From: Paragordius varius
Taxonomy: Eukaryota; Animalia; Nematomorpha
Assembly: GCA_964247055.1 (NCBI GenBank)
Contig: OZ176053.1
Span: 4,402,001-4,466,000, forward strand
Direction of reading: 5' to 3'
Length of the DNA stretch: 64,000 bases
Positions 4,273-48,831 of the stretch are shown here, piece by piece. The translations under genes and the position numbers were made by a program. The notes below the pieces were generated by a model that searched no databases, was not told the origin of the DNA, and saw nothing but the letters and a program-made list of their open reading frames with translations. Position 1 is the stretch's first letter; every line of letters starts with the position of its first letter.

Positions 4273-7200
4273 TTATGGCGTTAAACATTCGATGGAACTT
4301 TTTTTCATTGTGCAATAATAGAGATAGCGCAGGAAAAATAAAAGGGACAGTAAAAAGGCAGCTAAAGAAATATTATGTTTTAGTTATGTTGGGAGGTAAA
4401 AAATATATTTGGTTATGATTTATAAAAAAAAACTTACAGACGTATATAACAATCATCAATGGTTTCCTCTGGTAATGCGTTGTAAACTATAAATAAAAAT
4501 TTTATTGTATAAACCGTTCGAAAATAATATAATATATTAATTATTTTAAAATAAAATTTATTAACTATAAAACAAATACAAAATTAATATAACAATTATA
4601 CCAAAACAGCTAGGGCCGCTGCCAAGGCTATGATTGTAAATACCAAAAATAAAATTGATTTTTTGCGGGCAAAATTGGATCCAACAGATGAACTAAAAAT
4701 TATGTAACGGAAATCATATATTAACGTTAAATAAGCTAAACAATGAAATAATGAATAAAAAAATAGAAAACGATGGGTAAAACTCTTCGATATTATGGAT
4801 CGTAGACTAGTGTTGTACTAGTAATAACGTTATTTAATATATTTATACAAAAAATAATAGTCTTGTATGTCATTATTTCCAAAATTGTTTAAATGTGTGT
4901 TTAACAATAAGTAATTCATATATAGATACATTTTTCTGCAATGTGGACATCGGGCCAGAGTATTGCTTGCCAAATTGAACTAGATGATATAAAATAAGTT
5001 AAGTTGGTAAAAAAGACATATCAAACAATGTATAATATTCCCTTCTTTCCTAAATATAATGGATATGGTCATTATTCTGTGGCAGAATCAGACCCATATT
5101 ATAAAAAAAAGTTTTCCAAGTACTCTATAGATTTTATGCTAAAATGCTCCTTTTTTCTCCAAAATTCTAATTTACCTCTAAAAAGGATAATGTTTAAATC
5201 TGCTTTTATGCGCCATCTTTTTCATTTTGCATTGGATAACAAACCACTTTAATACAAATTATATGGACTATAAATATTCACCGAAAAGTGTTTTTTTCCA
5301 ATTATTATAATTAATGCTTGTAACTTTTTAATATATTATTTTGCATTGAATAAAAACAAATAACCAACCTATTTGATAGCAAAGTTTCTACATTGATTAA
5401 TTTGAAAATTTTTCAGTTATCACCGTCCTTTTCTTCGGGGGCACACTACCATTTAATGATCTGTTAGAGAAAATGGTATGCTGACACCCACATTAAAACT
5501 ACAATATTTTACAATTTTTGACCCCATTTTTAATATTTCTACCCTATTATATATGTAAATACCGCTAAACAACAAATTAAGATACTCATCCCTCGTTTTG
5601 ATCATATATTTGCCTAATCGTCTTCAAATTCAAAAATGATATAAAATATGCAGAGTGAGGATTCAACATTGAAATATTTATTTTGGGTTTTTTATTTATA
5701 TAGCTTAATTTTAGAGCTGTGCATTGATCAAAAAAGTGCTTGGTTTATTTAGCCGTAAATCGTTTTAATATTCAATTAAATAAGTTGATTTATACTAAAT
5801 TTTGAATTTATAAATTTTGACGAGTTGGCATGTAGGGTTGGCAACTATCAATTAGTCGTAAAGACGTTGAGGTATTGAAAATCTGAAAACATAGTTTCAG
5901 ACTCAAATATCACTCCAAACCTTGTCTCATATTATGATTTATAAGGGTTTGTTGTAAATAAAAGGTAGAGCTTTTTAAAGGAATTTGGATTTAATGTAAA
6001 AAAATTTATATCACATATGATCTAAAAGGATATGTAAAAACAAATAAATAAATGTATTCTCTAAAACCACTGAATAATAAAATTATAGTTCTCTCAAAAT
6101 TTAGAGTATACATGGAATAAAAATTTCATTTGGTCAATATTTTGCACTATTATTTTCAAAATCACATAGTATGTGTAATATATTGTTGAGTTTTTGACCG
6201 GTCAAAATATAATAAAGAGCCTGACCGCTTATAAATGCCGTCATTCGTGGTCATGAACAGTAATTATTACCATAAATATATAAACATTTCAATATATATA
6301 ATTGCTAAAAATTTAAATATCAAAAAGCACAAATTTTATAATTATACCATTATTTTATATTTAAATTATTAATATTATGGTTATTTTCTAAGCATTAGCC
6401 GGCAAACACAATCACCCTATGTGCAAATTCTAATATTATATAAATATATGGGAGAATTTTTATTAACCCATTATTTCTATGTTTATCCCCATTAGTTTAT
6501 AAAATATTATTTTAATAAGTAACTTTATAGGAATGAATAAAGTAGAGCTTTCTTTTGAAAATATAATAATAAATTACTAAAAATGTTTCGCCACAATGAA
6601 CACATTCAACCCGTACACTGTCAGGCGGCAAAGGAAGTGATGAAACAACTTTTGGCGTTTCTACTTGCAGGTTCAATATCCGTTTGCTAAAACAATTTAA
6701 ATAAAATAACAGTAAAAATACAATAATCCAAAATTTAGAAAATAGTATTTATAATTGAAAGAAACTGACCCAAATTAGGGTGTAAGAAAAAATATTATAT
6801 TTAATAATTTTGCCTTTGATAATAATAATAATAATGCTACTAATGCTATCTGCCATTATTATAAGAATCTATTCTTACCCATACTATCTAATTTAAAACT
6901 AAGTGTATAGATAAAGAATAAAATATTTAATGGGAGTAACCAATTTGCTCTTGGACAAGCTATCCGTGGGGCAGATTCTTTACAAATCAATAAACAGTTA
7001 CAAGGACATCTCACATACTTTTTTTGCAATGGTGCTGGCTTCAATGGCTAGCAATATAAAGATTAAAAATACCGTAGCTTCGTTACATATCTCACATTTA
7101 ACCACATGCTGATTTTCTTTACCCGTTATATCTATCATATTATCACAAACACGACATTGAATTATTCGTGATCCATCTGCTAATGCATTTATAAAAGGCC

Positions 7201-7359
7201 GGGGCTCTTCGATTTTTCCAACGCATTGTATACTAGTGGCTGTGTCATCTTAGTTTAACAGAATAAAATACTTTTTACGGTTGCAGTTTTATTATTATTG
7301 GAATCAATTGAATTTTGAGGTGCTAATAAAGGCTGTTTTTCTGAATCATTTTGGGCCAT
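4273..7359 (-). CDS. TMEM55: Type I PtdIns(4,5)P2 4-phosphatase (TMEM55/PIP4P1/2), 252 aa, 8 exons: 7359-7272, 7248-7073, 7047-6941, 6686-6578, 4979-4930, 4692-4602, 4486-4438, 4361-4273
   Basis: The spliced product reads [12 protein letters not shown]...[30 protein letters not shown]|[36 protein letters not shown]...CVHCGETFL|[21 protein letters not shown] plus two TM helices. The CX5R motif (CKESAPR) and an ExxPLL dileucine motif are present. All exon phases are consistent and all introns are GT-AG; introns 1 and 2 are 23 and 25 nt. Confidence 0.95.
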
Positions 7360-7442
7360 TGTGAAAATCCTTTTATGAAATACAGATGTTATATTGGTAT
7401 TTTAAAAAATCGCATTAATAACATAACCCTTTATTACATTAA

Positions 7443-7994
7443 CACTTCGATTTGAATTAGGGTATTTAAATACCTCAGACAAAATTTAAGTTAGGATTTT
7501 TGAAAAACTACTGAAGAAAACGGTCCCAATTAAAATTTATGCTTGTATCCTAAATAAAATTATATAAATATGCCAAAATAAAATAAAATTATGTTTTGAT
7601 AAAAAAGTTCCATGTAAACTACTTCTACGCCATTTTTATTTTACAAATTCTTTGCAAGACATCGTCTTTTTAATTTTAAGGGTGAAATTAAAGCTAATTT
7701 CTTATTTAAATTTAATCTTACATTGATAGAAATAGAAAAAGCGGTTTATTTTGTAATGTTTTTTAATTTTAACATTGCACAGATGTCACGTTGACTAAAT
7801 TTTTACCTTTAGGTTTTGGCTTAAAATAAGTAATATCAAGTATTTATGAAATTTTTTTTTTATATATTTCGGTTGATTTTGCCATGGTTTCGATTCCTTC
7901 CATATTTTTTAAAGGATTTAATTTTAAACAGGCCTGGGGTATCCAACTGCCCATTTAAATCAATGAACGAAAATGAATGTGTTGTATCCAAGTG
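7443..7994 (+). mobile_element. Non-autonomous DNA transposon (~550 bp) with CACTT...AAGTG termini beside TTAA/TAA; family A copy 1
   Basis: A homologous inverted copy lies at 59185-59754 and a partial copy at ~59815-60097. Termini CAC/GTG next to TTAA suggest a Chapaev3-like or piggyBac-like element; the superfamily is unresolved. Confidence 0.7.
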
Positions 7995-8949
7995 TTTAAT
8001 CATCATTTTTACACTAAAAAACAAAAAATATTTTTGCGACCTTAAGAGTTATAAATAATAATCTTGTATAGATTATATCATATAATGCGACCAGATATTT
8101 AGGCATTTAGGGAGCAATAAATGTCCTTTACACGAAATCAATATTGATGACAATGTATGCAATATAATTTTGTATTGAAATCAATTTACTACAAAAAAGA
8201 ATTTAATAATACTAATAAAACACACAACCTGAAATATTAGTTATTGGACTTAAACGGAATAAGATTAATCAAATCTAAAAATATAAGAGTTACATTTCAA
8301 TCCTTCAGAATTTTAAAGATTTGCTTTAAAGTTTTGTTGATTTTTTGCATATACAATAATTTATATTTAAAATAAATTTAAGACGTACGAATTTTAATCA
8401 AAATTCTGAAGCGATAGGAATGGTTATTTATTTAGTTATACAGATAAGGTGTTTTATAATATTATTAGGCATTTATATACCGTTTATCAGGGCTCAAACT
8501 ATGAAGTACGCATAGTAAAAGTGGAGTTTTTTTAAATATTTTGATATCAAAGCATATATTTAAAATTTTTATTGCACAACGGCATTTTCGTGTTTATTTT
8601 TAAGAGAATTAGCACATTTATTTTACCAAAAAAAGTATTCAAAAAATGGCGCAAATTTTCCATTTTCTGATATGAATCAGATACTATAAAAGTTATAATA
8701 ACTTCTTAAATCACTCGTAAGGGCCAATATCAAAAGCATCATGATAATCCTGATACATTCTCCTTCAGAATATAATATATTTCATCCGAATATTCTGTGA
8801 ACACTGTAATAAAAAATGTTCTGGTAGAAGCACATGGTGATTAGCTTCCACCCGTTAGAATTTTATGGTGTACAGAGAATTTAAATGTCGTATTTTAATG
8901 TAAGAGAGTGTTGGCTCTATAAACTGCGAAAATCTAAATTACGGCGGTT

Positions 8950-9500
8950 ATTACCCAACTCCCATTCAACTGCCATTGACGTTAGCGTTACATATACCCT
9001 ATAGAAGACATGTACGAATGGATAAGACTAAAAAACTCAATAAATGGGTATCCACTCAATAATCACAACTCACTTGTATACTCTTACTAGTGGCGAAAGA
9101 AAATCATTTTTGCTATGGTAGAAAGAAAAAGTTGGTTTAGTTAGAAAATTCAAAGCGCGAAAAAGCGTGACTGTGTTGGCAAACGGGTCCATTGCACCAG
9201 GACCAAATAGCTTTGGCATCCTGATGAATTTTTCGTTATATGATGCTCACAGCAAAAACAGTACACTACTTACGCATTCGTAACATTCGCACAACATATT
9301 CGCCTAAACCTGGGGTCATCTGATTATTAGAACTTCCCATCAATAGGGCACACGCTCGTAGTGCAGCACTTCAATAATTTTAATTTTTTTCGAAAAGGAC
9401 TCAGTGAATGGTTTGCACATATCGGTTTTCCGACATGGCATTCATTTATTATCTGATAGACGGGTGAAATATGCAGACATTGGAAAATTTTAATAAAACA
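8950..9500 (+). mobile_element. Decayed mariner (Mos1-like) transposase fragment
   Basis: Plus-strand pieces include KKLNKWVSTQ (WVPHEL motif), TYSP...SDY and SIGHTLVVQHFNNF..RKGLSEWFA, matching the Mos1-type C-terminus (SMGHALAEQRFDSYESVKKWLDEWFA). The reading is frameshifted. Confidence 0.75.
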
Positions 9501-10322
9501 AATGATTCATTTCTATTTATAATTATGTATTTATTTACCTAACAACTGGTTAAAACTTCAAAGACCTGCTACAGGGAATAATTCAAAACCGCACATTAAA
9601 GGAATAGATATGGAATATCCCTTTTTGGATAATGTAGCTATAGTTTCGGATAGTTCTTTCTAAAACAGTATTGTTAACCCTTTTTTTTATATCTCAAGGT
9701 TGATGAGGAGCTAAATAAAGTATATGAAGCAGTCACCCTCGGCATTTTATAAAAAATTAAAATTTGAAAAAATTTCCACCATTTTTAGAACAGGACTAGA
9801 CGAACAAATTCGAAAAATGGTATTTCGGCTCATTATAAATAAAAAAATTCCCATTTCTTATTCGAATGAGCTAATATATTTTCCTGATAATTGCTTCAAA
9901 ATAAATATTTGTGCAAAATATTCAGAGCGATGAGGATGAATTAAGCCGATACATCAATTTCGGTCACCCTCTACATATTCATAAAAACTAAAATATCCCT
10001 CACTATATAAGAATAGGCCGCTTTTCCCCAATATTTGCTTAATAATGAATATTTGTTAATAATCTAATTTAAATGGGGTGCTAAACACAAGGGTTATGTC
10101 AAAAAATTGGCTCAGTTACATTTGGCGAAATGGTAAAAATAAAACTATTAGACTTTTGGACTGGAGGACCGCATGTTTTTCGGATAAGTGCTATAAACTC
10201 ATAATTTTTGGGATTTGTATTATTTAAACTATTTACACGGGTAGGGGCAAAACTTAGTCGCTAATACAAAAATAAGGCTCTGTTACCGTCAGTGCCTTAT
10301 AAAGAAATTTTAAGGTTAAATA

Positions 10323-10545
10323 CAGAGGTGTCCAACACAAATGGTTTCGCAGGCCGCCTTTTCGGATTAAAAAATCAACAGGCTGCGCGCACAATATATT
10401 GGCATTAAAAAAATTTATTTTAATCAAAAGAATTTAAAACTACTATTTTTTCTGCTAGTTCATCGTCAAAGACTTATTCAGAAAATTTGTATTTTAAATT
10501 TCTCGCGGGCCACAGAAATATTTCGGAGCGTGTTAAACACCCCAG
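10323..10545. mobile_element. Small hAT (Buster/Charlie-like) non-autonomous element
   Basis: It begins CAGAGGTGTCCAAC and ends GTGTTAAACACCCCAG (degenerate TIR), with GC-rich subterminal motifs. The flanking 8-mers do not match each other. Confidence 0.5.
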
Positions 10546-12446
10546 TTTTAAGATTAAAATATAGGTGATCGAATCCAATTTAAGCAAAGCTAATAAAATT
10601 ATTAATTTTTGTTGATTTTGCGGTCATAATGTAATCAAAATTATTTTATTTATTAACTTTACTTTTAACTATATATATTATACTCTAGTTTTTTAACGAT
10701 TATTCGAAAATTCCAAAAATACGGCAAAAAGTTTGAAATGAGAATTCTTTTACAATATAAATTTTTACAAAATATATTTTGCATAATCGGCTTTATCGAC
10801 ATTAATTCATATTTTTAAATTTGGTTTAATATCAAAGATACTTTTATAGCTATTTAAATTAATCGCTCTCGGGTAGAAAATTACCATAAAAGGTGTATGA
10901 TTAAAAATTAAATTTATTTATATTATTATGTTATAGTACAATTACAATTTAACATAAAATCCAATAAGAATGCATTATTTGAAATTTTCACTATCATAGA
11001 TAATTTTAATTATAGTAGTTTAATTATTTTTTTCATATTATATACTTATTGTCCAACAGTAGCTTATCCAATGAATATAATTGATAGATTGGTTCATATT
11101 AAAAATAAATCATATTTAATACTTGATGACCTTTTGGAGTAGTTTTATACCCCAGAGCATTTTGAGATATGATTATCTATAAAAGTATTCACGGTATTAG
11201 GCCGAATTTAAAAATATGCTTTCTTTAGTTTTTAGGCGCATAATACGAAAAAAATTTTTTTAAGAATTAAAAAACAATCCTTATTTCAAACTTTTTCCCC
11301 GTTTTTTCTATAAATTTTTTAAATCGCTATTACAATAGGAAAATAAATGTATATTATGGTTTAAAAATGTATTCATTAACTTTAATAAGTTTTCAGGTTT
11401 GCCAGGATAAACTTGATATTTATTTATTTTAAAATCAGCTAATTAGTTAAATCGTGTTTTCGAGCTAAATTTAGACTCTAGAAGTCACAAACTGTAAAAA
11501 TATTAGCTTTTTATGTCATATAAAGGCGAACAATGTTTGATAATTAAAATTTAAGTAAAATAACTTTCAAAATGAGAAAAAAACTGTACACTACTCAACA
11601 TATTGGATTTTGACACAAACAGGTGGTCAGGCTTTTTATTGGCATACCTGGTATTTTAATTAGACTGAGAGAAATGTCGAAGCAAGGATTTATCAGATCT
11701 TAAAATATTCAATTTATGACAATAATCCAATCATCAAACCTTTTTTGGAGAATTTTCTCGTGATATTTTTCTTTTTGTGCAATTGTGCAATGACCTGAAG
11801 ACTTTTATTAAATTTAAAACATAACATTTATTAAAAATTGAAATTTTTAGATTAGATACGTTTTAAGCATTAAAGATTTTTATTGATTTATATGTTATAA
11901 TGGATCTAATTGAAAAAAAATAATTTTTATGCATTTTTATGTCCACCATTGAAAGTTAGGAAAATATCTGAAATTAATATCTCTTTTTTATACAATTCCA
12001 TAATTAAAAAACACGATATGTAAAAATAAAAAAAATATATAAATTCACCATTCTTGTCATATTTAATATATAAAACTTTGCTTATGTAGCCCCATGTTGT
12101 TCTTAATTTTTCTTAAGAACATCTTTTATAAATAGTGAAACTAGAGGCCGAAATAGTGTGCCAGACAAATATTATCTGTCCTTTTATTTTATACATTTAT
12201 AAAAAATGAAAGTTAAGCCGATAGATGAGGTATTTATAATTTTCCTTGCCTAATTAATTTTCTGGGAATGTATGCGACCGTTGGTGTCATTTTAAAATTA
12301 AAATTTGGAAAAATAGGATTTTTTTAATAACCGCTTCCTCGAAATATTAGAATAATGCATATTTTAGTAATAATAATTTATTTAAAATGATTTATAATTC
12401 AGTTTTAGTATTTTGTTTAATAAAATATATTTAAATGTGTCAAATA

Positions 12447-16187: not shown

Positions 16188-16219
<32 letters not shown>

Positions 16220-19200
16220 TATATAGGCTTGTTTGTTTAGTAGGTAGGGCGCCGGACTCTTACCAGGGGCGTACCGATGGGGGGGCAAGGGGGTGCATCA
16301 TGCCCCGGGCGCCGTTATTTAGGGGCGCCTAAATGATTTTTTTAAATTAAATTTAAATTATGCAAAAATAATAACAACTTTCAAGTAAAATTCTTCAGCA
16401 ACATAGGTAATCTGTAAAATAATATCAAAATTATATAAATGAGATCAAGATCAAGCAAAAAACAACTTTCATTATTCCCTTCAACATTTGCAAACTTATT
16501 TTTTCGCTTTAAAAACGTTTCTTTCTCACGCCCATATTGTTAATTCTTTTATTGCCTTTAATTAAATTATTTTAACTTGTCGCTCTGTTGTACACTTGCT
16601 GGCTTAAGTAAACTTACTCAATTTCGTTTAGCTTACAAGTCAACTGCGACTTTTTTATCACCCCACCCCTTATCTCTTTATAATTTATGATTGCATTTCC
16701 ATTTTATACAAATACCCAATTTCATTTATTTAAATACCCAAGATCATTCCGTCTCTAAGGTAGGTTTTATTATTAACATAGCCTTGTTTTTTTTATAATT
16801 ACATTTATTTTCATCATATATCTATGTCTAAACTCAGCGGTTACGCAAATAGGAAACGAAAAATCAAGGAAGAGAATAAAACAAATAAAATGCGAATGCG
16901 TATGAAATCTTATTTAACGAAAATATCTGACCCTAACATTGAAAAAGTGTATGCGACACAAACATAACGGTAATAACTTAAATACACCTGAAACCCTAGT
17001 TATTGATCTAATAAATAGATATAAAACTACAAATATATCATTGTAATTCCAAGCGCTATACCTACAGAGTTTAATGATGTCGCCTTTTTGTAATAATAAT
17101 GTCCCTCCCGTAATATTTAATAAGCTTCACACAATAATGATTCTTCGTGGATCAAGTATATCAAAATAAATGCCATCTCTTTGAAATCATCGTTAAATGC
17201 CTCAATCTTGGTTTTTTCGACGTGTAAAAAAAGGATTTGAAGTTGAGAAGTCTTGGCTTTTATATTTACCAAAGAACAGATCTGAGTATTGTTATGGATG
17301 CCTACTTTTTGATCGATCTTATTATATGAAATATTGGCCTGCATAAAATATCTAATCAACCAAAATCTCCCTGAGGTCGTGTTGCAAGTTTAATGTATCT
17401 AGATCACTCAGCACCAAATCCTGGAAATCTCTATCTTTACTAAAATTGCTCATTTTGACCCAATAATGGGAGAAAACATGAGAAATATTGAATTTTTTAA
17501 CGCTTTATCCTATGTTTTATTCAAAAATTATACATCTTTTAGCTTCAAGAGTTAAAGCTAAATTGATCAATGACATAAGCAAAGTAAATATTTTGAACTA
17601 ATATTTGATTCAACGCCAGATATAGGGCACCGAGAACAAACTCAAGTTGCCAAATAGGTGTTAATTGATTATGAGAAAAAGAAAGTTGTCATAAAGGAAT
17701 CCTTTATGGGTTTTTTTCCAGTTATTCAACAAAGTTGCATTGTCGATTGAAAATGTAATTTTAGAAAATTTAAATATGGATAATATTCAGTTATCAAATT
17801 GTAGATCTCCAATGCTATGATAATTCAGCTGTGGTGTCGGGTCACATTTCAGGCGTTTAACAAAGAATTACGGAAATAAAAGAGCAATATTTGTCAATTG
17901 TGACAATCATTCCTTAAATTTAGTAGGAGTCACGGTAGCAAAAAGATGTTATTGTTGTAACGTGTTTGGGACTAATTAATCCATCTTTTTTATTCAACTA
18001 TTAGATGAGACCTATTAAAAAATAAACTAAAAAACTATTAAGCGTGAGTCTGAAAGCCCGATAGAGTGCTAGAATTCAAGCACTTAATGCCATTGAGGGA
18101 AGAGATGATTTAATAGGCTCTTAAAAGAATTAAGTAAAAATATTTCAAATTCTAGTATAACAAGAAGTGAGGCATCCATTTTACTTCAATGTGTTTTAAA
18201 TTTTAATTTTTATCATTTTTCTGGCATCAAATATTTATAATCGATAGGGTTCAACATAGATTGCAAGATCTTAAAATTAATTTTAATAAAGCATTTAAGG
18301 GCGATATTTTTTTACTAAATTGTTTTATTGATTTTCAAAAAGAGAAGGGGGGAGGGGGCGCCATAAGTGTTTTATGCCCCGGGCGCCGCAAATGCTCGGT
18401 ACGCCACTGACTCTTACACAGCGTGCCAGGGTTTGAACCCTGAAACTACGCATTATTTCCATCATCTCACTGTCAGCCCTGCGCAGGCGAGTGTTAAAGC
18501 CTTCACATGTCCGGATGCATTTAAGTCCTTACCCTTTGATATAAAAATGGAAAAAGGTGACTCTAAACTGTATATTTTTGTTTTATATTTGTATGCATGT
18601 TAAATAATTAACGATATCAGAATTCGATGTAACATTTAAAATGGTGTGCAGTCTATTGGGTTTCAAATAAAAAAAACTTTGTATTAAAATTTAATTTATT
18701 CTTGCCTGATATCGAATCCCACGAGATTGTAAAAGATGCTAAATCATTGGTTGATTTTGAATTAGTTATGATTGTGATAATTAGGACATGAAGCCACGAT
18801 GTTGCCATTACTAAGGGTTCCTTCCACATTAAAATTTGACTTTGGTTTTTAGTATTATTTTCCCTTGTTTGATTATGAAAATCGTTAACAGATATTGGGC
18901 AAAAAGTTTTTTTCAGTAAAGGTACTTTAAACGGATCCTGAATTTGAATGTAGTTTTCACACAATAATGTATCTTTATTGTATAAATAAAAAGGTTTAAT
19001 ATATATTATATAATTTTTAAATTTCAACCTTATATATAGTGCAACATAAAAATAATAGTTTAATTAAGAATATAATTTTTTATTTATTTATAACATTCCC
19101 TAAAATGCCAAACTGTCCCACTCATTTTTTAAGCAAAATCTTTACTTAGAAATATTTCAAAGATTTGAAAAGTATATTTTTAAGCCATATTCCCATCTTA

Positions 19201-22200: not shown

Positions 22201-25200
22201 GTGCCTAATAGGCTAAAGAAAGCATAATTTTTATTGCCCCTATACTTTTAAAATTTTTTTAAGATAATTAATTTGTAAATGACTCTTTGGTATTAAATTA
22301 CTCCCAAAGGTAATGAGGTGTTTCCATAAAAACTCATTAAAATTATTTGTATATTCAAAAAGGTGAAGAGCAGATTATTATTAAAATAAAAGAATATTTT
22401 TTATATTTTTATTCTATAAAATAAGTGTGTTTTGCAAGCGCTAGCGATAATAAATAAAACTAGTTATTTGTCCTCGATGGAAGTTATAAATTTTTAAAAA
22501 TTTATTAATGACTTACTTCAATTATAAAGCATGATATAAAAATTAGACTTATTCTTTTAATACCCCGAATAAAATTATCCAATTTTTATGCACTTTGACA
22601 CTTCATCTTTAAATTTCGATTACTACTGGAAACGTTCCTGGCAAAATCATAATAAGCCTTGTTTAAAAGGGTAAAAAATAATATAAATACCTTCTGGTTC
22701 TTTATCAATCCAAGCCTTTATCATTATTTTTGGTACCTGGGAAACTTTATGATTATAATAATGAATGTTAATTTGTGATGTAAAATGTTCTTCTAATTTG
22801 TTACGTGGTGACGTTAAGGTGTATTGCAACAATTTTTCACTTAGCTTCCAATCTCCACATAACATTTTGGTTTTAAGATATTCACCCATAAGCGATTTTG
22901 TATCCGCAATACTTTGATAAAAATTTTCATGATTGATGGCCAGGCTATTCCCATCACGATGTAATATTTGCAAATACTCCATCAGACACCTAATGCATAT
23001 AAGATCAACAAGATAATGACTCTATAAATTTTTTCCTTGTAAAAATATTGTAGCGCGGATTAGCTCATTAAAATGTTAAATTATTAAAAAAATTGTTTTT
23101 TGAGAATCCTATTTTATGTCAACTGTTTGCATATAATTTTCAATTCCAATCCTTTATATGAAGATAAAAAAATAGGGTTTGGATTATCAAATTTTGTTCC
23201 ATTTCCGTTATACTGCGCAACAAGTAATAAATAAATTTTTGAAGGTAATTCGAAATGCCATATTATATCTTTCACATTCTACAACAACAAAAAAACGGTT
23301 GTTTAATTTAGTAAAATGTCATAAGCTGTGTAAAAGGCAAATTTGACAAAAATTTATTATGAATTTAGAAATATCATGATACTTTTAAACAAATATATGA
23401 TAGTATTTTACGGTTTAAGAAACAAACAAAAAAAACGAAAACCCATGACTTTTTGTGATATTTAGATCCATTATACGAATATGCATCACGGAATAGGGTT
23501 CAAGGCTTTTTATGATAATGGAACAGTTTGTCCAAAACGCATCGTTTTTGTCGCCAAATACATCCTTACTCACATTCACAATCACTTTTGGGAATTTATA
23601 CGAAAGATTGTAAGTATTACACGTTTCAGAAAAGGATCCTATGCATAAAATTTATATTTTATGATATATTCTTCAAAATTTATATAGAAAAATTAAATAA
23701 TTTATCTTTAGTTAATATTTCATAATATGAAGTAAAAAGCGTTACTCTATCAATCTTATTGTTAATTGTGAAAACCTTTTTTACCGTAAAATATAATCGT
23801 ACTAATCACAACATTCGAATTAGAATCTTTTAAAAATTTAAGGAATTGAATTTAACAAACTGGGGAAAATATTTGATATATATTCCTTTATTTATTAAAA
23901 GAATATTCAGAAGAATTTAATATTAACTGTCGCGGTTTTGTGAGACAACAATACATAATGCATTTCTCAAGCTTGAAGCGTTCGAAAAAATCTCTGAAAT
24001 CAATCCATCTGTTTTAATAGTATCTCTGCAACCTTAAAAATATTATTATTGTTACCCAAATGCGTTATATCGGGTGCTATTATCCAAAAATCTGTTTCAT
24101 TGGTAATATTTCTATTATGCAAAAAAGTATACGGTAATCAATGTAAGGTATAATGTCAAATAAATGACAATTTCTGGACGAATTAAAATTCTTGGGGCTT
24201 GGATAAAAAATTCAAATAAACAGGGGCCCTAATCATATTTTATTTAATTGTTAAAAAGATTTTGTACAAAAACACAGAAATAATGACGTTTTTTTACTTT
24301 ATTAGATTAACAATTTAAAGATTAATTTGATTTGCTGCTCTTTAAAATAATTATTTCTAAATTTAATTGAACATAAAGATTTTAGAGTTCGGAGCCGTAA
24401 CCACAAAAATTAGTAGACCTCATACGTTTTGTATTGATATTAAGTAATAATCGGTAGCTCAAAACAAAACCTAACATGATTAAACCAACCAACTTTAAAA
24501 CCGTTTTTTATGTTGATTCCGATTTTGTCATCATTATTCCAAACAAAATAAAACTGATTTCATAATTTATTTAACACATTCAGAAATAGCCACCGTAAAT
24601 ATTGCAAAAATTATGGGTGTACTTAATATATAATAAGATGAAAATAAAAGTATCGAATAATTTTGTCTACTGTTAATATTCAACATGTATGTATAAATAT
24701 TTAGATTGGGATTCAGGTAAAACATTAAACGAGAGTTACATACTGATTAATCACACAACTTTTAGATACTCATATTTATATATATATATATATATATTTA
24801 GGCTGCTAATAGCCATTCGAAAGAGTTTGCGCTACGTGTTATATTATGAAGAGGGATGGGGGGGGGGGGGGGAGGGGAGGGTTAGGGCTTAATCGAGAAT
24901 TATAATTTGGCCAATAATAATATAAATGTGGTAAAAATTAAATGGTTTACCTAATACCGGATTGAATTATGTTGCAAACTTTTGTTTCATTAAATGGGAT
25001 CATATGAATAGTTTTAAATGTTGTTTGACATTCCCCTAAAGCATTTTCTAATGTAACCGGCGGCCGAATAATACAGGCCGTTAGAGATTCATTTATTGTA
25101 ATACACTCATGATTCAAATTTTTCAAACTTACTAATCGTAGGAGAACCGCATATGTGTTAAGAATAAAAAATAGTACAATTACTAAATCCCAATTTTTTA

Positions 25201-29181: not shown

Positions 29182-31974
29182 TTAAGAGGTCAGTTTCTCT
29201 TTTTCCTTCAATCTTTCTTCCATATCCAAAAGTTCTATTCTGCTTTGTTTTTCATCAGCAATCAACTTTTTCGATTCTTCAGCTATCTTTTCAAGGTTAT
29301 CGAGTATTTCCTTATTCTTAGTATCATTCCCAAGGCTAATTGTGGCCTATAATAATATGTATGTATATACTTGGGTTAAAAAATAAAAATGGTAATATAT
29401 GATATAAAAACTGTTTCCTACACTAGAAATATAATGGGATTTAAATTCAAATGTATGATAGGCATTGTTTAATAAAAAGTATATTAACAATTAAAATTTA
29501 TCATAAAAGACAGGCTTAACATATCGAAACATTGAAATCGCAATTTAATTTAGAATATTGGTAAAGTATCACATATTTAAAAATGAGTTTATATATATTT
29601 TCACATAAGCTAATAATTTCAATACAATGCATAAATAATACTGAAACCAAAAATAGATATTGGAAAACCCCATATCTAAGTTATTTTCCAAACTAAAAAA
29701 CGGTAAATTTGTTAAAAAAATCCAAACGATAGGGTTACTTTATACAACATTTTTTCGAGTTGTTTCAACTTATCCTTTAATAAAGCTATGTCAGTTTGGT
29801 AGCCCTGTCTATCGAAATTTCGGCGGCGTTCAAGATTTTGATACTTTTGTTCCAAAGCTTTATTTTTTTGAATTAGGGCCTCATTCCTTTCCTAAAGATA
29901 ATATGTGGAAAAAGAAATGATAAAAAAATGACCGTTTACATTGTTTAAAATTAAAAATAATTGGAATTAATTGAGTCAGACTATAAACTATTTGGTAATT
30001 TATATTCGGTTAAAAGAATGTTATGATTCGGTTTAAATGTCGGTGAGATTAAATAAATTTTCGATTAATTAAGCTATTATAATTGTTATATAATTTAAAA
30101 ATCATTGTGGGACAAAATTAACCCCATGATAGCAGAATGATATAATAAAGTAAGATGGTAAACATGGTCACTGCACAAATAATCAACTTTAAGTATACAA
30201 CTTATTTTTTATAATTGCAATTTGAAGTATATGCCAGCAAAGCTCTATAAATGACTTAATTACATTTTAAATATCTAACGTTAAATAATCGGTCAATAAA
30301 ATAAATTATAAACAAACTGTTGCATTAATTTAATGCATTTCCTACAATTATGAAAATTAATATATTTTTTAGTGGTATTCATAAATCTGTCAATTATATG
30401 ATTGTAGTTTATAAAAAAATAATTTTTATATTTGCTATAACATTACCGTATAAATACTGCGTTCAGCTTCAAACTTTTCAGACAACAATTCATATTCGTT
30501 TTCAAGTTCCAAAATCTCTTGTTTGTAATGCAAAACTCCGTCCTGGGCTAATTTTAATTTCTTTTCCAATGTTTTATTCTGGATTGCAAAAGAACACAAT
30601 TAAAAAGCAAATTAATATGGAGATGAAAGATTTAAAGTTTATATAAACTATTTAGGTGTAATAAGATTCAATTACTTATACAAATTAATTTATACCAATA
30701 TAACGTTAAAGTTTATATATATTATAATAACCATATTATTGTTATTTCTATACTCATATGAAAAAATTAAAAAACAAATCTTTAAAAAAATATATGGCAA
30801 TAAAATTTTTATTAAACATTAATCTTTTCATTAGCAAAATATCTCACATTTTTGTGGACAGTTGAAGCAACATCGTTATTTGATCCGGTACTTGTTGAAG
30901 GGATCGATATCCCAAGCCTCTGCAACAGCTGTAAAGAGTTTGGGTCTTCAGAATCTTTATAGTAATTATATTATTTGTTTTAAAACTTTTATTATATTCA
31001 TCATTTTTTATATGGTCATCATTGGGTTCATTTGAAGCAAAACGCAAATGTTTTAGTTGAGATCTTAACTCTTGAATTTGAGTTTGCAAAGCCGTTTCCT
31101 TTACCTGATAAATTTCTTGATTTTTGTAATACATACATTTAAGTTCGGCATAATCTTTAGCCGTTTGACATAGTAATTCTTGGGTCGATGATAATCTGTC
31201 AGTTGGAAAGAGTTATTATTTAAAAAATTTATAAAAAGAGTTAAATATGAATTATTTGCAATATATAATTAAGTCCATAATATAAAACAATATTAAAACC
31301 CGTTTAACATTGAATTGAATTCACAAAATATTGAAAATTAATTACCTTTTTACCATATTTTTCTGCTGTGAATCTTCTTTGGGAATTGCTGCTTGTTCGA
31401 AAAACTCTTTTTGCTTTAACATTATTTTTTCTAAATTGTTTGTGATAAATCGCCTCTGATCCTGAATTTGTAAGTTGAGAGCTTTGATTTGAAGGGTTTG
31501 ATCGGACAGACTATTTTTATACAATTAATACTTTTGAGCTTGGGTCGTATTAGAAATATATCCGCTAGAGTTTGTTTTGGAGTTCTAGGATTAAAAAATT
31601 ATATTACTTCATCAAATAATACTATTTCAAGCTCTTTTATTCTTTGTTTAAAGCTAATATTTTTTATCTGAAAAAATTAAAATCTTTTACCCGTAATTGA
31701 TCGTTCTCAGAAGTAAGCCTTAAAACATTTTCCTTTTCTTTTAAAATGCATATATCAACATTATTTATCAACGCTTGTAATCTTAGGATTTCGTCATTTT
31801 TTTCTTTCAATTGCTTCCAATAATCAATCTTAAAATTTAATTAAAATCTACTTGACAAATACTTTGTTTCTGTATGTCATCAATCTTTTTTCCAAGTTTT
31901 GCGTAATCTTTTTCAATTTCGTGAGATTTGCCTTTATAAAATTCAAGTAAATTTTGAATTGGCTGGGAAGCCAT
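29182..31974 (-). CDS. CCDC77: Coiled-coil domain-containing protein 77-like, ~339 aa. Exons: 31974-31852, 31828-31691, 31667-31608, 31584-31532, 31510-31346, 31195-30987, 30954-30848, 29346-29182
   Basis: The spliced product NLLEFYKGK...CQ|IDYWKQLKEKNDEILRLQALINNVDICILKEKENVLRLTSENDQLR|IK...TLQIKALNLQI...TQELLCQTAKDY matches CCDC77 motifs recalled from memory (ELLEYYQKK, EREHVLRLYSENDRLRI, QVEALQAQL, TQELLYESTKDF). It needs introns of 23, 23, 23, 21, 150, 32 and 1501 nt. The last two junctions are less certain. Confidence 0.85.
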
Positions 31975-32413: not shown

Positions 32414-42926
<10,513 letters not shown>

Positions 42927-43428
42927 TTCATTTTGTGTTTTTTTAATAAATTTATATCTGTATAGAAAAATTTAATTTTTTAAATGCCCCTAATTCGTGT
43001 TATATTTCTATGGTTTATAACCTTTTTTTTCCATAATTATTTTTTAATTCGTAAATTTGGATATCAATGAATAAAGGCCTTTACTTTCAAATACCTTAAA
43101 TATATTTTTATCATTATCATAAAAATTAATATTTAAGTTTATTTAATAATCACATTTGCACTTAATTCTACATAAGGATGGCCAAAGAAGTCTATCATTT
43201 ACTTTGTGGTAAAAAGGATATTATTTTAGCGCCACACTCATATAATATTTAAGATTTTAAATATTCTTTCAATTTAAACTCGTTTACCAAATTATGTAAA
43301 ATATTTATTACAATTTTTCACGACATATAATATGATATAATACAATATATGGTATAAAAAATGTGTGGTAGTTTTTGATTAAGGATTAGATTAGAAGAAT
43401 TCTTTCCTAGCAACCAACCAACCAGGCT

Positions 43429-46400
43429 TTAATTAAATATGTGATCCATTGCTTTTGAAATGTCCCAAGAGGATGCTGAAAGAGCTAAGCGAGCTTGATC
43501 CTAAAAAAAATAAATTATAAAATAACATTTAAATTGTAGATGATAATGGTTTAAAGGAAATTAATTTATAATTATTAAACGAGTTTTTATTTATATCGCA
43601 AAATTAAAATTTTTAATCTGGAACGAAACTCTTTATAAAAAACTGAAATTATACGAACAAAATTTAAAATATAAAGACAAATATTTTTTTCTAAAAATCA
43701 TACTTTTTAAATCTTGATTTATTTTAATCTAACTCATTGTTTTGAATGGCAAAGTGTGAAATAGATATTTAATACTAACGCAATCAATTCTATATTTTAC
43801 AATTGTAAGGAGCTTATATGGGAGCCATTTAGGTTTTAAAAAGTATGGTTGTCTTTTAGATAATATTTGTCTTTATTCACCTTTTGTCCATATAATTTAA
43901 ATTTTTACTGTATATATATATAAATGGTTAAATATGATGTTGACATTCTTAACCAAACAAATAGTAATACCCTAATACTGTATTATTTACCGATTTCTAT
44001 TATTATAAATTTGATAGAATCTCTAACACACTATTTTAACTAGCATATTATACAGCTTTTAGAATTTACAGAAGCTAACATTCATTAAAAATATATGTGT
44101 TCAATATTAAAAAATGATGTGCAGCAGATCAAAACATAGAAGAAATTTTAACGCGATGCCGATATTATTAATATATAAAATTTTCATATCATTTTCTTCC
44201 AATGATTTACTTTAAAAGAAAAGTAATTCAAACCTCATCTATCCCCATATCCTTTAACCTTTGCACGTATTCCACGAATTCGGGGTGTTCATCGTTTGGC
44301 GCTATAAAGGGTTACAATTAAAAAGAAGTGAAGACAAAAATTATTGACAATATAGGCATCCAAAAAAATGTAACATATTTAAAAATTAATTTTTTAAAGA
44401 TAAAAATACCAAAAAATACATTTATGAAAAGTTAAAAACTAATAAAACAGGGTACTTACAGTAAAATAAAATTATCAAACGTTAATTAAATATTAAAAGA
44501 TTTTTAAAAAATAGTTATTTTTTAACCATTTTTTTTATTGTAAAATGATTGCAATCTTAAAATGCATAATTGAGATGGTTACCGCTTTTATCTATTTTTT
44601 TTGGTAATATGTCATGAATCAAGGCGTATCTTTGAATAAAAGATATTTATCTTTATATTTTTACATTTTATCCGTATAATTCCAATTTTTTTCCATATAT
44701 ATATATATAGAAGGATTGATTAACTTTTCATAGATATTTGAGAGGTATTGATAAAAAAATTTTGCAAACAAACCCTACCATGAGCATATATGTGGGCCCA
44801 ATGTTTAGCTGTGAGTCGAAACATTTCAGGGTCATTTTTGTATTGCTTAGCTACTACGGCATCCTGAGGGTCATCGGGTTCTGGGGATGAGAGTAAAGCT
44901 TGAATAGAAAGTAATACGACGCGTAAATTCATTGCTGCGGCCCTTTAGTAAAAATCGTAATTTCATTTTGGGGTTTTGATCAAAATTACCGATAAAGTTA
45001 AAAAGTTTTAAGAATTCACCAAGCTTCATAACTTAACTCGTGCGACCATAAATATAAAAATTGGACATAAAAAATGGTCCCACACAAATAATAATTTTTG
45101 AATGCTTTAATTCTTAGTATTAAAATTAATACAATGTCAACCTTATCTATTATGGTTGATTTCGATTTTATGCATATAGAATGTTTAGATTTCGGAAAAA
45201 TACCAATATTTTATTTTATTCACTGACATTGTTTATTTTGCTACGGTAAAATGTTATCTAAATTAATCATAAACTAAACCGAAACCAAACTTTAGGCATA
45301 AAAAAGTCTTTGCAAGAGAAGTGATCCGGTCTGAAACTGTTTTCTAAAGAATATTATCCTAATATTTTAATTAATTGTATAATTACTAAAATGTAGGATA
45401 AATACATATCATATAAAAAGTATTAAAATGTATAATAATTTTTATAACTATGCGATCCTGGAATCTTAAAAGCCGATATTTTTTATTTCTTAATGATATG
45501 TTTTTACATAGATAAAATTAGACCCGCCGAATGTCTGAAACAGTGGTATTTAAACCGCTATTCACAGGCCTGCGGTCCTAAAATTTATTTTTTATTAATT
45601 ACTAAAATTTTATTTAGATAATATATTTTTTTAAATTATTTTTACACCTGCACATCTTGTTAAACATCATATCGCTATAAAAAAATGAGTCCAATTTAGA
45701 CACTATATTTGATGAAACTCAAAGAGTATATTTTTCTAATGCCAAATATGCTTAAATTTACTGTTAAGAAGCATAGAAATCGCTTAGATGCCCATAGTGA
45801 CGACTTATTAAAATAACATTTGCCTGTAATGATGCCAAACCAGATATGCTAAAAATGTTGGTTAATAACCAAAATATTTTTATATTTAAACAGCAGAAGA
45901 GACATAGTTGCGAGTTTTATGCGAGACACAAAAAACCTCGGCGGACTGATCTAGAGTATAAATGAAACGAACGGCGCTGCAATTTATGGCAGCAATATGA
46001 GGCAAAAAAATATTTTATTTGGCCTCTCCATTTTTTGGGGTATACCACTGCTTTAAATCTAAAAAAAGTCAAACATCTAATAATTTTAAACAATGCCAAC
46101 GGAAAACAGAATAAGCCAACTCAACAGCGCAATCTTTGCCGAAAAGATTTACTATATATTTTAGTCAAGAACTTTGCCCATAAAAAATTACCTAAAGTAA
46201 AATATTTTTTCCATAAAAAAATACAACTCCTATCAAAAAGTACGAATAAAATACAATGATCATAAAATAAAAAATGAAGTAAGTTAGAGGTTTACATTTA
46301 ATAATTTACTGCTAAAGAAATGCTTAATAATTTGTCAGCAAATAAATAAATTTATATACCATTGGTCTTTAAGAATGTCTAAACATATTGCACCGGTAAC

Positions 46401-46708
46401 AGAACTTATATTGGGATGCCATATTTTTGATATAAATTTTATCTAAAATTTACATAAATCATCCAAACTTTTGGTGGTTGAAATGGATAAGAATCAGGTA
46501 TTTTGACATCTAAAAGAAAGGTTGCTCCTTCATATGGGGTATCAGGAGGCCCTGCTATTTGTCCTAACAAATCTAAATAGTTGTCATTTACCAACTCAAT
46601 ATGTATTCTATCATTTAAGGTCTAAATTTTAACGAGTAACTAAACCTGTTCGGCTTTTACAACTTCTTTAAACTCTCTTTTGATCCGTGTAACAGCTATA
46701 TTATCCAT
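43429..46708 (-). CDS. UBE2K: Ubiquitin-conjugating enzyme E2 K (E2-25K), 200 aa. Exons: 46708-46646, 46621-46469, 46442-46360, 44942-44779, 44301-44234, 43500-43429
   Basis: [16 protein letters not shown]...[12 protein letters not shown]...YPFQPPK|[28 protein letters not shown]|[34 protein letters not shown] plus a C-terminal UBA domain. The total is 603 nt. Introns 1 and 2 are 24 and 26 nt. Confidence 0.97.
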
Positions 46709-46749
46709 CCAACTTATGTTTTTATGTTTTTTGGAGTGACATTGTGCTT

Positions 46750-47050
46750 ATGGAAAACACTTTCAGCTGTACAACGCCTTCTGGAAAATGTTTCAAGGGC
46801 CAAATTTTATCCTATAACGACAAATATAACTATATAATTCTAAGTATATTAAATAAATTATATTTAGAAACAAACACCAATAAAAAAAATTGCGACTTAC
46901 ATGTAATAAATTTGAATGACTGTCAATTTGACAACACTCAATTACAAAATCAAGCCGAATTACCTGTTCCCGATGTTTTAAAAGCAATATATATATTTTT
47001 ATCTATAGATTGAACAAAATTACAAATCTCACAAAAAATTTACCACTTAA
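46750..47050 (+). CDS. LSM12: LSM12-like Lsm-domain protein (short model). Exons: 46750-46843, 46868-46983, 47009-47050
   Basis: FSCTTPSGKCFKGQILSYNDKYNYIILK|TNTNKKNCDLHVINL resembles the LSM12 N-terminus ([36 protein letters not shown]). The model uses a 24-nt GT-AG and a 25-nt GC-AG intron. The 3' end is uncertain and no AD domain was found. Confidence 0.6.
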
Positions 47051-47767
47051 TTACGATAAACTAGATTGTCAGAAATACTTTGAATAAATATTAGAAAATA
47101 AAATTGCATTGATTGATATTTTAATAGCTAATGAATTCTTCCATATCATTTTATGGTTTTCCCAAAGCAATTAGAATTTTCTTATTTCTAATATTTTAAT
47201 TTATATTGACCAATTTATGTTAAGCTGTATTTTTTTTTGCTGCTAAATTTGCATATTATATTTTTGTGCAGCAAATTTTTTTGCCAATGTTCAACAATAT
47301 ATCAATTAGACTCACCAATATATTTTTTCTGGTCACCTAGTTTATGTAGGTCATTCATGCCGACATGGGAGAATCGCATTCCAGGAGAAAAAAAACCGGT
47401 AAAGTTTTAAAGACCCAAAAACTTCAGTTAACCTCTACTTATTGTAAATAGCTCAGTATTTATCCTTTTTTGTTTTATCATGGCCCTTTTAATGGATCGA
47501 TTTTTTCTTAGATAGTTTTTTAAAACAATCAGCTCAGTTTATTTAAAAATTTTGAATTTTCACTGGCGATTGCTCTTAAATGGTTTACGAATCAGTTTTA
47601 CCAAAAATCCCACATATTATAAAAATCAGCATCTTTAGGCCGACTATCTGACGCGTCTTCAGATTTCAATAAAATACCCAAGCTACTAAGGCGCTTCTTA
47701 TGCTGCCTCCAAATAAACAGCAGGCTTTCATGTGCGCTGCACAAAATAATACCACTTTTATAGACAT

Positions 47768-48831
47768 ATGCTCCGAACAGTTTTTATGTCATCATCATTA
47801 AAACAGATAGATATCGGTGGAACACATGCTAAATTTAATAAAATTTTAACCAATTATTCCAACAAATATTTTAATAATCTAATATATTTTGGCGGGGATG
47901 TTCAAGTAATTATTCGATTAATATATAGTATTACCAAAATGTTATGGAGTTACACAGGGATAATAAAAGATATGTCAATTGGAGCTACGAAAACGTTTAT
48001 AAAATATTAGAAACAAAATTTCCTAATCACAATATATTTTTAATTGTACCCACCATATTTTACCTTAATACATTTGCATCATTTATTAATTTTGTTCCGT
48101 GCGATAAATTTGGAATTCCATTAGTAGACAAACAGATTATAACTTTGGAAAATTGTGGTATTCTCCACTTGATTGACCTTTTAAAGAATTATTTATGCGT
48201 TAATAATGCCATCTTTTCTGATAATTATTGGAAAATTATAGGGTTTAGTAAAGGATGTATGGTACTTAACCGTTTCTTAATTGAAATATCTGCGCTAAGA
48301 AATATAAATAACTTTTTTCCCCTCATTCCCATTTATCAATTAGATTTGTCAGACGAAAAAGCATACGATATAACATCATTTATAAATAATTTAACGGATT
48401 TATTTTGGTTAGATGGAGGACATTCAGGCACTGGGAAAAATACTTGGCCAACTGACTCAACAGTTATTCAAAATTATATTTCAAATATATTTTACAATCG
48501 ATATTTATTATTATGTTCTAATCCAAATAACAATAATTTTGAATTAAATCCTTTCAATGTTCATGTTCACGTAACACCTTATCAAATAAAATGTCCAAAT
48601 CGACCCTGGATAGGAAAGGAGGAACATAAATTCCATCAATATATGAAAAAGGCTCTAAATACGGCCCAGGATATATGTAAAAAGGAAAATTCATCATATT
48701 TCTTACCATTCAATATTGATGTTAATAAACTTATAAGCAGTATAAATTTTTATCGTAAAATACATTTTGAGGATGAAAATGCGCCCTTATCTGTTGAAAA
48801 ACATTTTAAAGTGCTTGAAATATTTAAATGA
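47768..48831 (+). CDS. C2orf69: Mitochondrial protein C2orf69 (UPF0565) homolog, 346 aa. Exons: 47768-47905, 47929-48831
   Basis: IYFGGDVQ|YYQNVMELHRDNKRYVNWSYENV...FP...NFV, IIGFSKGCMVLN, WLDGGHSG and HVHVTPYQ..CPNRPWIGKEE are present. A 23-nt intron joins the two ORFs in frame. Confidence 0.93.

Follow-up and report, generated by a model that had tools for sequence, protein, structure and literature searches.

Probable introns of 21–26 nt at the starts of genes, beside long introns, in a stretch of a horsehair worm genome

Introns are about 25 nt long in Paramecium, and tiny introns are also found in nucleomorphs and microsporidia; to our knowledge, ciliates, nucleomorphs and microsporidia are unicellular and essentially all of their introns are tiny. 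Stentor introns measure 15–16 nt (PMC13644364), and the retention of tiny ciliate introns usually leads to a premature stop (PMC5014332). Closer to the case described here are two groups of animals, the dicyemids, with a median intron of 27 bp in Dicyema sp. (PMC6543705), and the myxobolids, with median introns of 22–27 bp in Henneguya, Thelohanellus and Myxobolus (PMC13644364). Both groups have reduced splice signals of the form 'GTa ... AG', and a 2026 study reports that the myxozoans it examined have kept the canonical U2/U2AF machinery; the main text of that study, a survey of 51 animal genomes, does not mention Nematomorpha (PMC13644364). In neodermatan flatworms (Gyrodactylus salaris and tapeworms), intron lengths are bimodal, with short introns predominating among those at ordinal positions 1 and 2 of a gene (PMC4040987).

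We analysed a 64,000-nt stretch of the genome of the horsehair worm Paragordius varius (the window), in which a preliminary description had reported 13 introns of 21–26 nt. All 13 segments lie at the coordinates and on the strands given there, are 21–26 nt long and run from GT to AG, with the sole exception of the second LSM12-like segment, which runs from GC to AG (Table 1). Inside the terminal dinucleotides their A/T content is 80–100%, whereas GC makes up 30% of the exons and 27% of the window as a whole. GT..AG strings of 21–26 nt number 1,216 in the window (both strands), or about one per 105 nt of strand, and the motif by itself means nothing as evidence of an intron. Moreover, in simulated windows four or fewer freely chosen GT..AG strings gave ATG-started frames of 100–150 codons by chance, and the restoration of a frame is by itself weak evidence in DNA as AT-rich as this. 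Because such strings are abundant and chance frames open in simulated windows, homology is needed as proof. The earlier claim that conserved reading frames require all 13 introns was too strong, because 4 of the 13 remain candidates (two LSM12-like segments, the 'receptor' and the 'transposase'); introns are strongly supported for two segments in UBE2K, two in TMEM55, four in CCDC77 and one in C2orf69, as judged from Pfam profiles, human UBE2K and the orthologue in the horsehair worm Gordionus. A blind dynamic-programming scan picked exactly the claimed introns of CCDC77, TMEM55 and UBE2K.

Table 1 Genes, introns and candidate introns in the window
Feature	Coordinates	Strand	Details
TMEM55 (PIP4P-like) gene, 3′ end unmapped	4599–7359	-	introns 23, 25, 254, 1598, 237 nt
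TMEM55 intron 1	7249–7271	-	23 nt, phase 1, 88 nt from ATG
TMEM55 intron 2	7048–7072	-	25 nt, phase 0, 264 nt from ATG
'Receptor' candidate intron	24033–24055	-	23 nt, ends correct
CCDC77 gene	29185–31974	-	introns 23, 23, 23, 21, 150, 313 or 460, 555, 392 nt
CCDC77 intron 1	31829–31851	-	23 nt, phase 0, CDS position 123; Gordionus 42 nt, CDS position 123
CCDC77 intron 2	31668–31690	-	23 nt, phase 0, CDS position 261; Gordionus 43 nt, CDS position 261
CCDC77 intron 3	31585–31607	-	23 nt, CDS position 321; Gordionus counterpart 41 nt, CDS position 327
CCDC77 intron 4	31511–31531	-	21 nt, phase 2, CDS position 374; Gordionus counterpart 44 nt
'Transposase' candidate intron	40442–40463	-	22 nt, in decayed pseudogene
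UBE2K gene	43432–46708	-	6 exons; introns 24, 26, 1417, 477 (or 468), 733 nt; junctions solved against conserved peptides
UBE2K intron 1	46622–46645	-	24 nt, GTTTAG...TTTAG, phase 0, 63 nt from ATG
UBE2K intron 2	46443–46468	-	26 nt, phase 0, 216 nt from ATG
LSM12-like candidate intron	46844–46867	+	24 nt, in frame, without stop
LSM12-like candidate intron, GC–AG	46984–47008	+	25 nt; GT–AG alternative 46975–47008 (34 nt), same frame
C2orf69 intron	47906–47928	+	23 nt, phase 0, 120 nt from ATG; exons 47786–47905 and 47929–48831

In UBE2K, exon 1 (46646–46708) corresponds to residues 1–21 of human UBE2K and exon 2 to residues 22–72, and the junctions are seamless at 21|22 and 72|73. The UQ_con profile reaches position 63 at the end of exon 2, continues from position 64 at the start of exon 3 and resumes at positions 92/93–139 in exon 4. 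Two in-frame stops lie inside intron 1. In TMEM55, the Tmemb_55A profile crosses intron 2 at 90|91 (the end of exon 2 and the start of exon 3), and exon 4 carries profile positions 127–161 directly past a split Cys codon. TMEM55 intron 1 links the sole ATG-bearing exon (7272–7359) to exon 2, which itself has no start codon, and if retained leads to a stop at codon 35; its support is weaker because the N-terminus lies outside the coverage of the Pfam profile.

For CCDC77, the best solution of the blind search on the minus strand consisted of exactly the four claimed introns, and spliced residues 1–107 align with residues 1–107 of Gordionus CCDC77 without a gap. Intron 2 is further placed by a gap-free alignment against two homologues, and the gap-free block ends at the junction of intron 3. 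Intron 4 lies in a variable stretch; together with intron 3 it is needed to bring the conserved LQIKAL..QRRFIT block into frame, and its retention gives a stop two codons later. Each of the eight CCDC77 introns has a counterpart in Gordionus, where the series is 42, 43, 41, 44, 880, 219, 876 and 760 nt. In C2orf69, the intron site (GGDVQ|) and the phase are common to Gordionus, where the intron is 232 nt long, and to the limpet Patella vulgata, where it is 598 nt long.

Taken together, these alignments strongly support the reading of nine segments as real introns, which, if correct, would make this the third animal lineage with introns of fewer than 30 bases. An opposite reading is that the segments are not introns at all, being either chance GT...AG strings that happen to bridge frameshifts in decaying genes or errors of assembly or sequencing. 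The frequency of GT..AG strings, and the ease with which a free choice among them opens frames of 100–150 codons, lend themselves to this reading, which is a fair one for the transposase pseudogene and may also apply to the 'receptor' and the LSM12-like segments. As an account of the segments in general it is nevertheless highly improbable: the secure junctions agree with independent profiles and orthologues, residue-exact after removal in six (both in UBE2K, TMEM55 intron 2, CCDC77 introns 1 and 2, and C2orf69), the four in CCDC77 and the one in C2orf69 match annotated intron positions in other species, the DNA of two individuals agrees, and the genes that hold the nine secure introns are otherwise intact as far as their stop codons. 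TMEM55 intron 1 and CCDC77 introns 3 and 4 are supported mainly by frame and start codon.

The other four segments are treated as candidates. The first LSM12-like segment is not demanded by the frame, because it is itself in frame and free of stops. For the second, the GT–AG alternative is as valid as the GC–AG form, the exon past the segment reaches a stop within 13 codons, and a search farther downstream revealed no AD domain. The LSM12_LSM match of this gene, at 22 bits, is under the family cut-off, and homologue retrieval for it gave none. Both pieces flanking the 'receptor' segment, as well as a nearby 110-aa ORF, are without a match to any family. The 'transposase' is a pseudogene whose frame is broken by stops at conserved positions and by another frameshift shortly after the segment; repairing the frame by removal of the segment therefore proves nothing.

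Five segments (two in UBE2K, one in C2orf69 and the two LSM12-like ones) are spanned by DNA contigs of two individuals without any indel. UBE2K intron 1 is unaltered in DNA contigs X2 and X4, contigs of DNA samples S1 and S2 span UBE2K intron 2 without differences, and the C2orf69 intron contains one SNP. Given this agreement of contigs from two individuals, the five are not assembly errors. Among the four DNA runs no contig lacking a segment was found, which argues against the idea that the segments are cut out of somatic DNA, as short sequences are in ciliates, and not out of RNA. Such elimination would suit segments so short and AT-rich; in addition, adult horsehair worms are largely gonad, and whole-worm DNA could be mostly germline. 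However, the segments end in GT...AG and not in TA...TA, and at the corresponding sites the annotations of Gordionus and Patella show ordinary introns of 41–598 nt, so that we regard DNA elimination as extremely improbable. Runs of RNA type that bear the same species label agree with UBE2K exon 1 only, at 88% identity, and then diverge; because of this identity and divergence, they represent another organism. In metagenome contigs, neither spliced nor unspliced junctions of the tiny introns were found.

Nineteen introns were modelled in the four genes, nine of 21–26 nt, ten of 150–1,598 nt and none of 27–149 nt, the class limits thus being drawn from 19 introns with nine secure tiny ones in four genes. 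Each of the four genes begins with its tiny introns, one to four in number and at most 374 nt from the ATG, which is taken here as the measure of distance from the promoter, and no later intron is tiny. This confinement to the 5′ end, missed by the preliminary description, is the main regularity in the data. Measured along the coding sequence the two classes overlap slightly, with tiny introns at positions up to 374 and the first long introns at 299, 371 and 539. The description of a discrete GT–AG class of 21–26 nt (mode 23) in a non-compact animal genome is supported, in a window that is gene-sparse and carries transposon remnants. Within the window, the median intron of the four modelled genes does not fall below 30 nt, 9 of 19 being tiny.

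Two length classes with the short one concentrated at the first ordinal positions (here in four of four genes) recall the Neodermata, but the modes there are about 32–36 bp and about 58–73 bp, whereas here the short class spans 21–26 nt with a mode of 23 and the range of 27–149 nt is empty. With dicyemids and myxobolids the worm shares a parasitic way of life, GT–AG introns of less than 30 nt at conserved ancestral positions, signals of approximately 'GTa' and 'AG', and a handful of A residues ahead of the 3′ end. In those groups, however, tiny introns form the bulk, whereas in the worm they are limited to the first one to four of a gene and stand beside introns of 150–1,598 nt, and the host is an ecdysozoan whose DNA, in this stretch, is gene-sparse with transposon remnants. 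Ciliates, nucleomorphs and microsporidia resemble the worm in having lengths near the physical minimum and in that retention usually leads to a premature stop, but they are unicellular with nearly all introns tiny, in contrast to an animal with two classes.

The preliminary description had inferred a spliceosome remodelled for introns of defined length, and genome-wide miniaturisation by such a length-measuring spliceosome, as in dicyemids and myxobolid myxozoans, would account for the narrow range of 21–26 nt with its mode of 23 and for the reduced splice signals, which are like the 'GTa ... AG' signals of dicyemids and myxobolids (PMC13644364). We consider it unlikely, given that about half of the introns of these genes measure 150–1,598 nt and have similar ends and that the tiny ones are limited to gene starts. 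Moreover, tiny introns do not imply remodelling, because myxobolids keep canonical U2 and U2AF machinery despite introns of 22–27 bp (PMC13644364). A remodelled spliceosome is not needed to explain the findings; the window itself holds no genes for spliceosome components.

The splice signals are minimal in both classes, the long introns of the same genes having similar ends (GTA/GTT...AG). The earlier statement that there is no branch-point consensus is roughly right, except for a weak enrichment of TAA 5–14 nt before the 3′ end (in 8 of 9 introns, compared with 53% of background strings; p=0.03). GTA is weakly enriched in the tiny introns, and their pyrimidine content is not distinctive.

On this sequence evidence, the segments are very probably ordinary U2-type GT–AG spliceosomal introns of ancestral origin, shrunk to 21–26 nt and forming one of two classes separated by position. 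With their mode of 23 nt, such U2-type introns would lie close to the lower limit of workable length, and their recognition would depend on minimal signals, namely a 5′ GTA or GTT and a 3′ (T/A/C)AG, to which an A in the TAA-like motif some 5–14 nt before the 3′ end may contribute. Unspliced transcripts are presumably discarded, because 10 of the 11 segments in the five named genes would, if retained, lead to a premature stop. That the tiny introns keep to the 5′ end hints at either a local deletion bias or a connection with co-transcriptional splicing near the promoter or the cap.

The tiny introns would be ancestral and not new insertions, because where the loci are readable the same positions hold introns of 40–44 or 232 nt in Gordionus, a distant nematomorph, and one of 598 nt in a mollusc. 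Gordionus sp. m RMFG-2023 is the nearest sequenced relative, with 64% repeats reported, and gives the best protein match for both CCDC77 and C2orf69 (for the latter E 8e-61, the next being 2.5e-34); the GC content of 27% in the window compares with 26.9% reported for Gordionus. Taken by themselves, these data point to a nematomorph, most likely from another genus than Gordionus. A ciliate origin of the window is excluded by these best matches and by the animal intron positions held in common; no rRNA or mitochondrial marker was found within the window. The two worms are alike in intron positions, in AT-rich composition and in having the first three or four introns short with later ones of 219–880 nt in Gordionus, but the short class measures 40–44 nt there and 21–26 nt here, and the C2orf69 intron 232 against 23 nt. 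The 5′ class of short introns in Gordionus is read here from public loci, and no report of it was found in the literature searched. In Gordionus RNase PH, the first introns are 41, 40 and 40 nt long.

All 13 of the GT/GC–AG segments that the preliminary description listed as micro-introns are present with their positions and strands correct, and they have lengths of 21–26 nt and GT–AG ends (GC–AG for 46984–47008). Excluding the terminal dinucleotides, they are 80–100% A/T, compared with 30% GC in the flanking exons, in a window that is gene-sparse, has 27% GC throughout and gave no match in whole-window tRNA and Rfam scans. GT–AG strings of 21–26 nt number 1,216 in the window (one every ~105 nt of strand), and the motif by itself carries no weight. 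Moreover, in 30 simulated windows of matched dinucleotide content, ATG-started frames of 89–173 codons arose from the free choice of up to four such strings. Because frame restoration is weak alone in this simulation, we rejected it as proof of introns and took homology across the junctions as evidence instead. Homology, frame and start codon together uphold the earlier statement that conserved reading frames require these introns for nine segments (two in UBE2K, two in TMEM55, four in CCDC77 and one in C2orf69), for which the core observation is real; the requirement is not established for the two LSM12-like segments, the 'receptor' and the 'transposase'. Retention of the segments would produce a premature stop in 10 of 11 cases across the five named genes, the exception being the first LSM12-like segment.

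Positions of the gene features, tiny introns and other frames in the window (intron lengths in order from the start codon)
Feature	Position	Strand	Remark
UBE2K exon 1	46646-46708	-	aligned with human UBE2K residues 1-21
UBE2K exon 2	46469-46621	-	aligned with human UBE2K residues 22-72
UBE2K introns	tiny: 46622-46645, 46443-46468	-	gene model: 24, 26, 1417, 477 (or 468), 733 nt
TMEM55 introns	tiny: 7249-7271, 7048-7072	-	gene model: 23, 25, 254, 1598, 237 nt
CCDC77 introns	tiny: 31829-31851, 31668-31690, 31585-31607, 31511-31531	-	gene model: 23, 23, 23, 21, 150, 313 or 460, 555, 392 nt
C2orf69 exons	47786-47905, 47929-48831	+	23-nt segment between
C2orf69 intron	47906-47928	+	gene model: 23 nt
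LSM12-like candidates	46844-46867, 46984-47008	+	24, 25 nt
'Receptor' candidate	24033-24055		23 nt
'Transposase' candidate	40442-40463		22 nt
Decayed transposon-type gene	39400-41300	-	
172-codon frame	16909-17453	-	
440-aa open frame	428-1750	+	

The junctions in the conserved genes can be placed precisely. The two tiny UBE2K introns are exact to the residue, because the exons align with human UBE2K and the UQ_con profile is contiguous across the junction, with position 63 at the end of exon 2 and position 64 at the start of exon 3. In TMEM55, the Tmemb_55A profile passes from position 90 at the end of exon 2 to position 91 at the start of exon 3, and the 23-nt first intron, which lies outside the protein segment covered by the profile, connects the sole ATG-bearing exon with exon 2. 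For CCDC77, a blind dynamic-programming scan from every ATG in the window returned the four claimed introns exactly, as a 180-codon frame that was the top minus-strand solution. The spliced residues 1–107 align without gaps with residues 1–107 of P0122, the CCDC77 protein of the nematomorph Gordionus sp. m RMFG-2023 (hereafter Gordionus).

Across these four genes, intron lengths fall into two groups: nine of 19 introns measure 21–26 nt, ten measure 150–1,598 nt and none lies between. The tiny introns are always the first introns of the gene, 63–374 nt from the ATG. Bare GTA/GTT...AG ends are common to both classes, and the tiny class shows weak enrichment of GTA and of TAA 5–14 nt before the 3′ end (p ~0.03 each, n = 9 introns). 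The best interpretation is that this horsehair worm has two intron classes that depend on position in the gene, the shorter of which has shrunk to 21–26 nt; the remodelled spliceosome that had been proposed is not required.

We compared these genes with those of relatives. The best match of the C2orf69 open reading frame (295 aa) is a Gordionus protein (E 8e-61, 39% identity; next match 2.5e-34), and an exhaustive search with a CCDC77 exon gave P0122, encoded on the same Gordionus chromosome, as the best match. Protein identity to Gordionus, whose genome has 26.9% GC, 64% repeats and a BUSCO score of 71.6% according to its preprint, is 39–44%. These matches make a horsehair worm other than Gordionus the most likely source of the window. 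We rejected an origin from a ciliate or another protist, given the Gordionus best matches and intron positions common to animals. Mapping P0122 on its locus gave introns of 42, 43, 41, 44, 880, 219, 876 and 760 nt; introns 1 and 2 lie at coding positions 123 and 261 in both genomes, and the remaining introns correspond. The first introns of the neighbouring Gordionus RNase PH gene measure 41, 40 and 40 nt. The C2orf69 intron occurs after GGDVQ in phase 0 in three species, with 23 nt here, 232 nt in Gordionus and 598 nt in the limpet Patella vulgata. Because longer introns occupy orthologous positions in relatives, we interpret the tiny introns as shrunken ancestral introns.

Two further database entries bear on these loci. 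The annotated 323-aa Gordionus C2orf69 isoform P0001 (L001:10001-13048) begins at an internal Met just past the conserved intron site and is without the first coding exons present in a 366-aa isoform. P0136, a full-length CCDC77 homologue of 474 aa on a metagenome-sample scaffold (L003:1001-2425), may be transcript-derived or come from an intron-poor eukaryote; as it is encoded intronless on such a scaffold, we rejected it as a reference for intron positions.

An assembly artefact could also produce short frame-breaking segments. The five segments at 46443-47928 are spanned without indel by DNA contigs of three sequencing runs (X2, X3 and X4) from two samples, and the C2orf69 intron carries one internal SNP in these contigs and no indel. 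An artefact of assembly is thereby excluded for these five. We take these runs to be DNA because their contigs lie flat over genes and spacers alike. RNA-type runs under the same species label (X11–X13) contained none of this genome's 31-letter words, and at 80% likeness their match was limited to 49 nt in UBE2K exon 1 (88% identity), beyond which they diverged. The 30 flanking letters after that match are in frame and stop-free (EVAKSEESLKDS, translated), a read-on that fits spliced mRNA of a relative and is not evidence for this species. Neither spliced nor unspliced junction patterns occurred in JGI metagenome contigs. We infer that the nine segments in the conserved genes would be spliced, because their junctions are exact and the orthologous Gordionus introns belong to gene models with RNA-seq support.

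In the comparison with window positions 45000-49000, an abundant UBE2K-like contig in X11–X13 diverges beyond exon 1, and the divergence of these runs suggests that one name covers a cryptic or misidentified species. Over the same interval, run X5, labelled as a different organism ('organism B'), holds this genome at 3–8x word depth, with several SNPs common to sample S2 and most contigs continuing into unrelated sequence; the run may derive from an infected host or from mixed material. An exact look-up of the window's open reading frames in the protein collection returned nothing, so this genome is apparently unannotated there.

According to a survey of September 2026 (PMC13644364), introns below 30 bp are restricted among animals to two lineages, the myxobolid myxozoans (medians 22–27 bp) and the dicyemids. 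Among the 51 animal genomes of that survey, the main text of which does not mention Nematomorpha, only Dicyema resembles the myxobolids, in which the signals are reduced to 'GTa' and 'AG' and the canonical U2/U2AF machinery is kept. In dicyemids the median intron is 27 bp (PMC6543705) and the mean 38 bp. Intron lengths are bimodal in Gyrodactylus and tapeworms, where the short mode, ~32 bp, is found at ordinal positions 1–2 (PMC4040987). Our literature searches found no report of short introns in horsehair worms, and the Gordionus preprint never uses the word 'intron'. In contrast to myxobolids and dicyemids, tiny and kilobase introns coexist here within the same genes, the tiny ones are confined to gene starts, and the stretch is gene-sparse with transposon remnants. 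The P. varius genome would be the third animal lineage with introns below 30 bp, an ecdysozoan and different in kind, and it would separate intron miniaturisation from genome compaction. With the same introns at ~42 nt in Gordionus and ~23 nt here, a natural comparison is available in which minimum length and the effect of position become askable. Genes of this structure will be broken by annotation pipelines and by read mappers run at default minimum intron lengths, a point that matters for gene-loss estimates in nematomorphs.

A broader and rather doubtful proposal is that horsehair worms possess a 'micro-intron zone' close to the promoter, where all introns in the first few hundred bases of a gene have been driven to a lineage-specific minimum (~42 nt in Gordionus, ~23 nt in this genus). 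The two minima would then imply that the tolerance of the splicing machinery close to the cap has changed recently. As common gene finders reject such short introns, the models of many genes in genomes of this kind would be wrong and, if so, the large-scale loss of universal animal genes that has been reported for Nematomorpha could partly be an annotation artefact.

Among the four weaker candidates, the first LSM12-like segment is in frame and stop-free; the second (GC–AG) could be replaced by a GT–AG segment of 34 nt without a change of phase, and the exon after it reaches a stop after 13 codons. A search of the downstream sequence found no AD domain, and a homologue search with this gene returned none. 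The 'receptor' has no family match in Pfam or the protein atlas. In the 'transposase', conserved positions are hit by in-frame stops, and there is a further frameshift; the region holds a decayed copy of a transposon-type gene that is widespread in animals, with terminal parts on both sides.

Additional blind-scan candidates from ATG 17453 (three segments), 331, 20249, 26813 and 62698 were dropped because they look like chance. From ATG 17453, removal of GT–AG segments of 22, 26 and 23 nt leaves a 172-codon frame, of a kind expected ~0.03 times per simulated window; its peptide is without recognisable relatives, and its segments have a lower A/T content than the secure introns. Pfam gave no match for the 440-aa open frame, which carries a long Asn/Gln/Pro-rich tail, and the protein collection lacks an identical sequence. 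A GT–AG segment of 25 nt at 349-373 could give this frame an upstream ATG, but may be a chance string. Finally, the start codons of UBE2K (46708, minus strand) and the LSM12-like gene (46750, plus strand) lie head to head, 41 nt apart, and their spacer resembles a very compact bidirectional promoter, with candidate tiny introns at similar distances on either side (63 and 216 nt in UBE2K, 94 and 210 nt in the LSM12-like gene).
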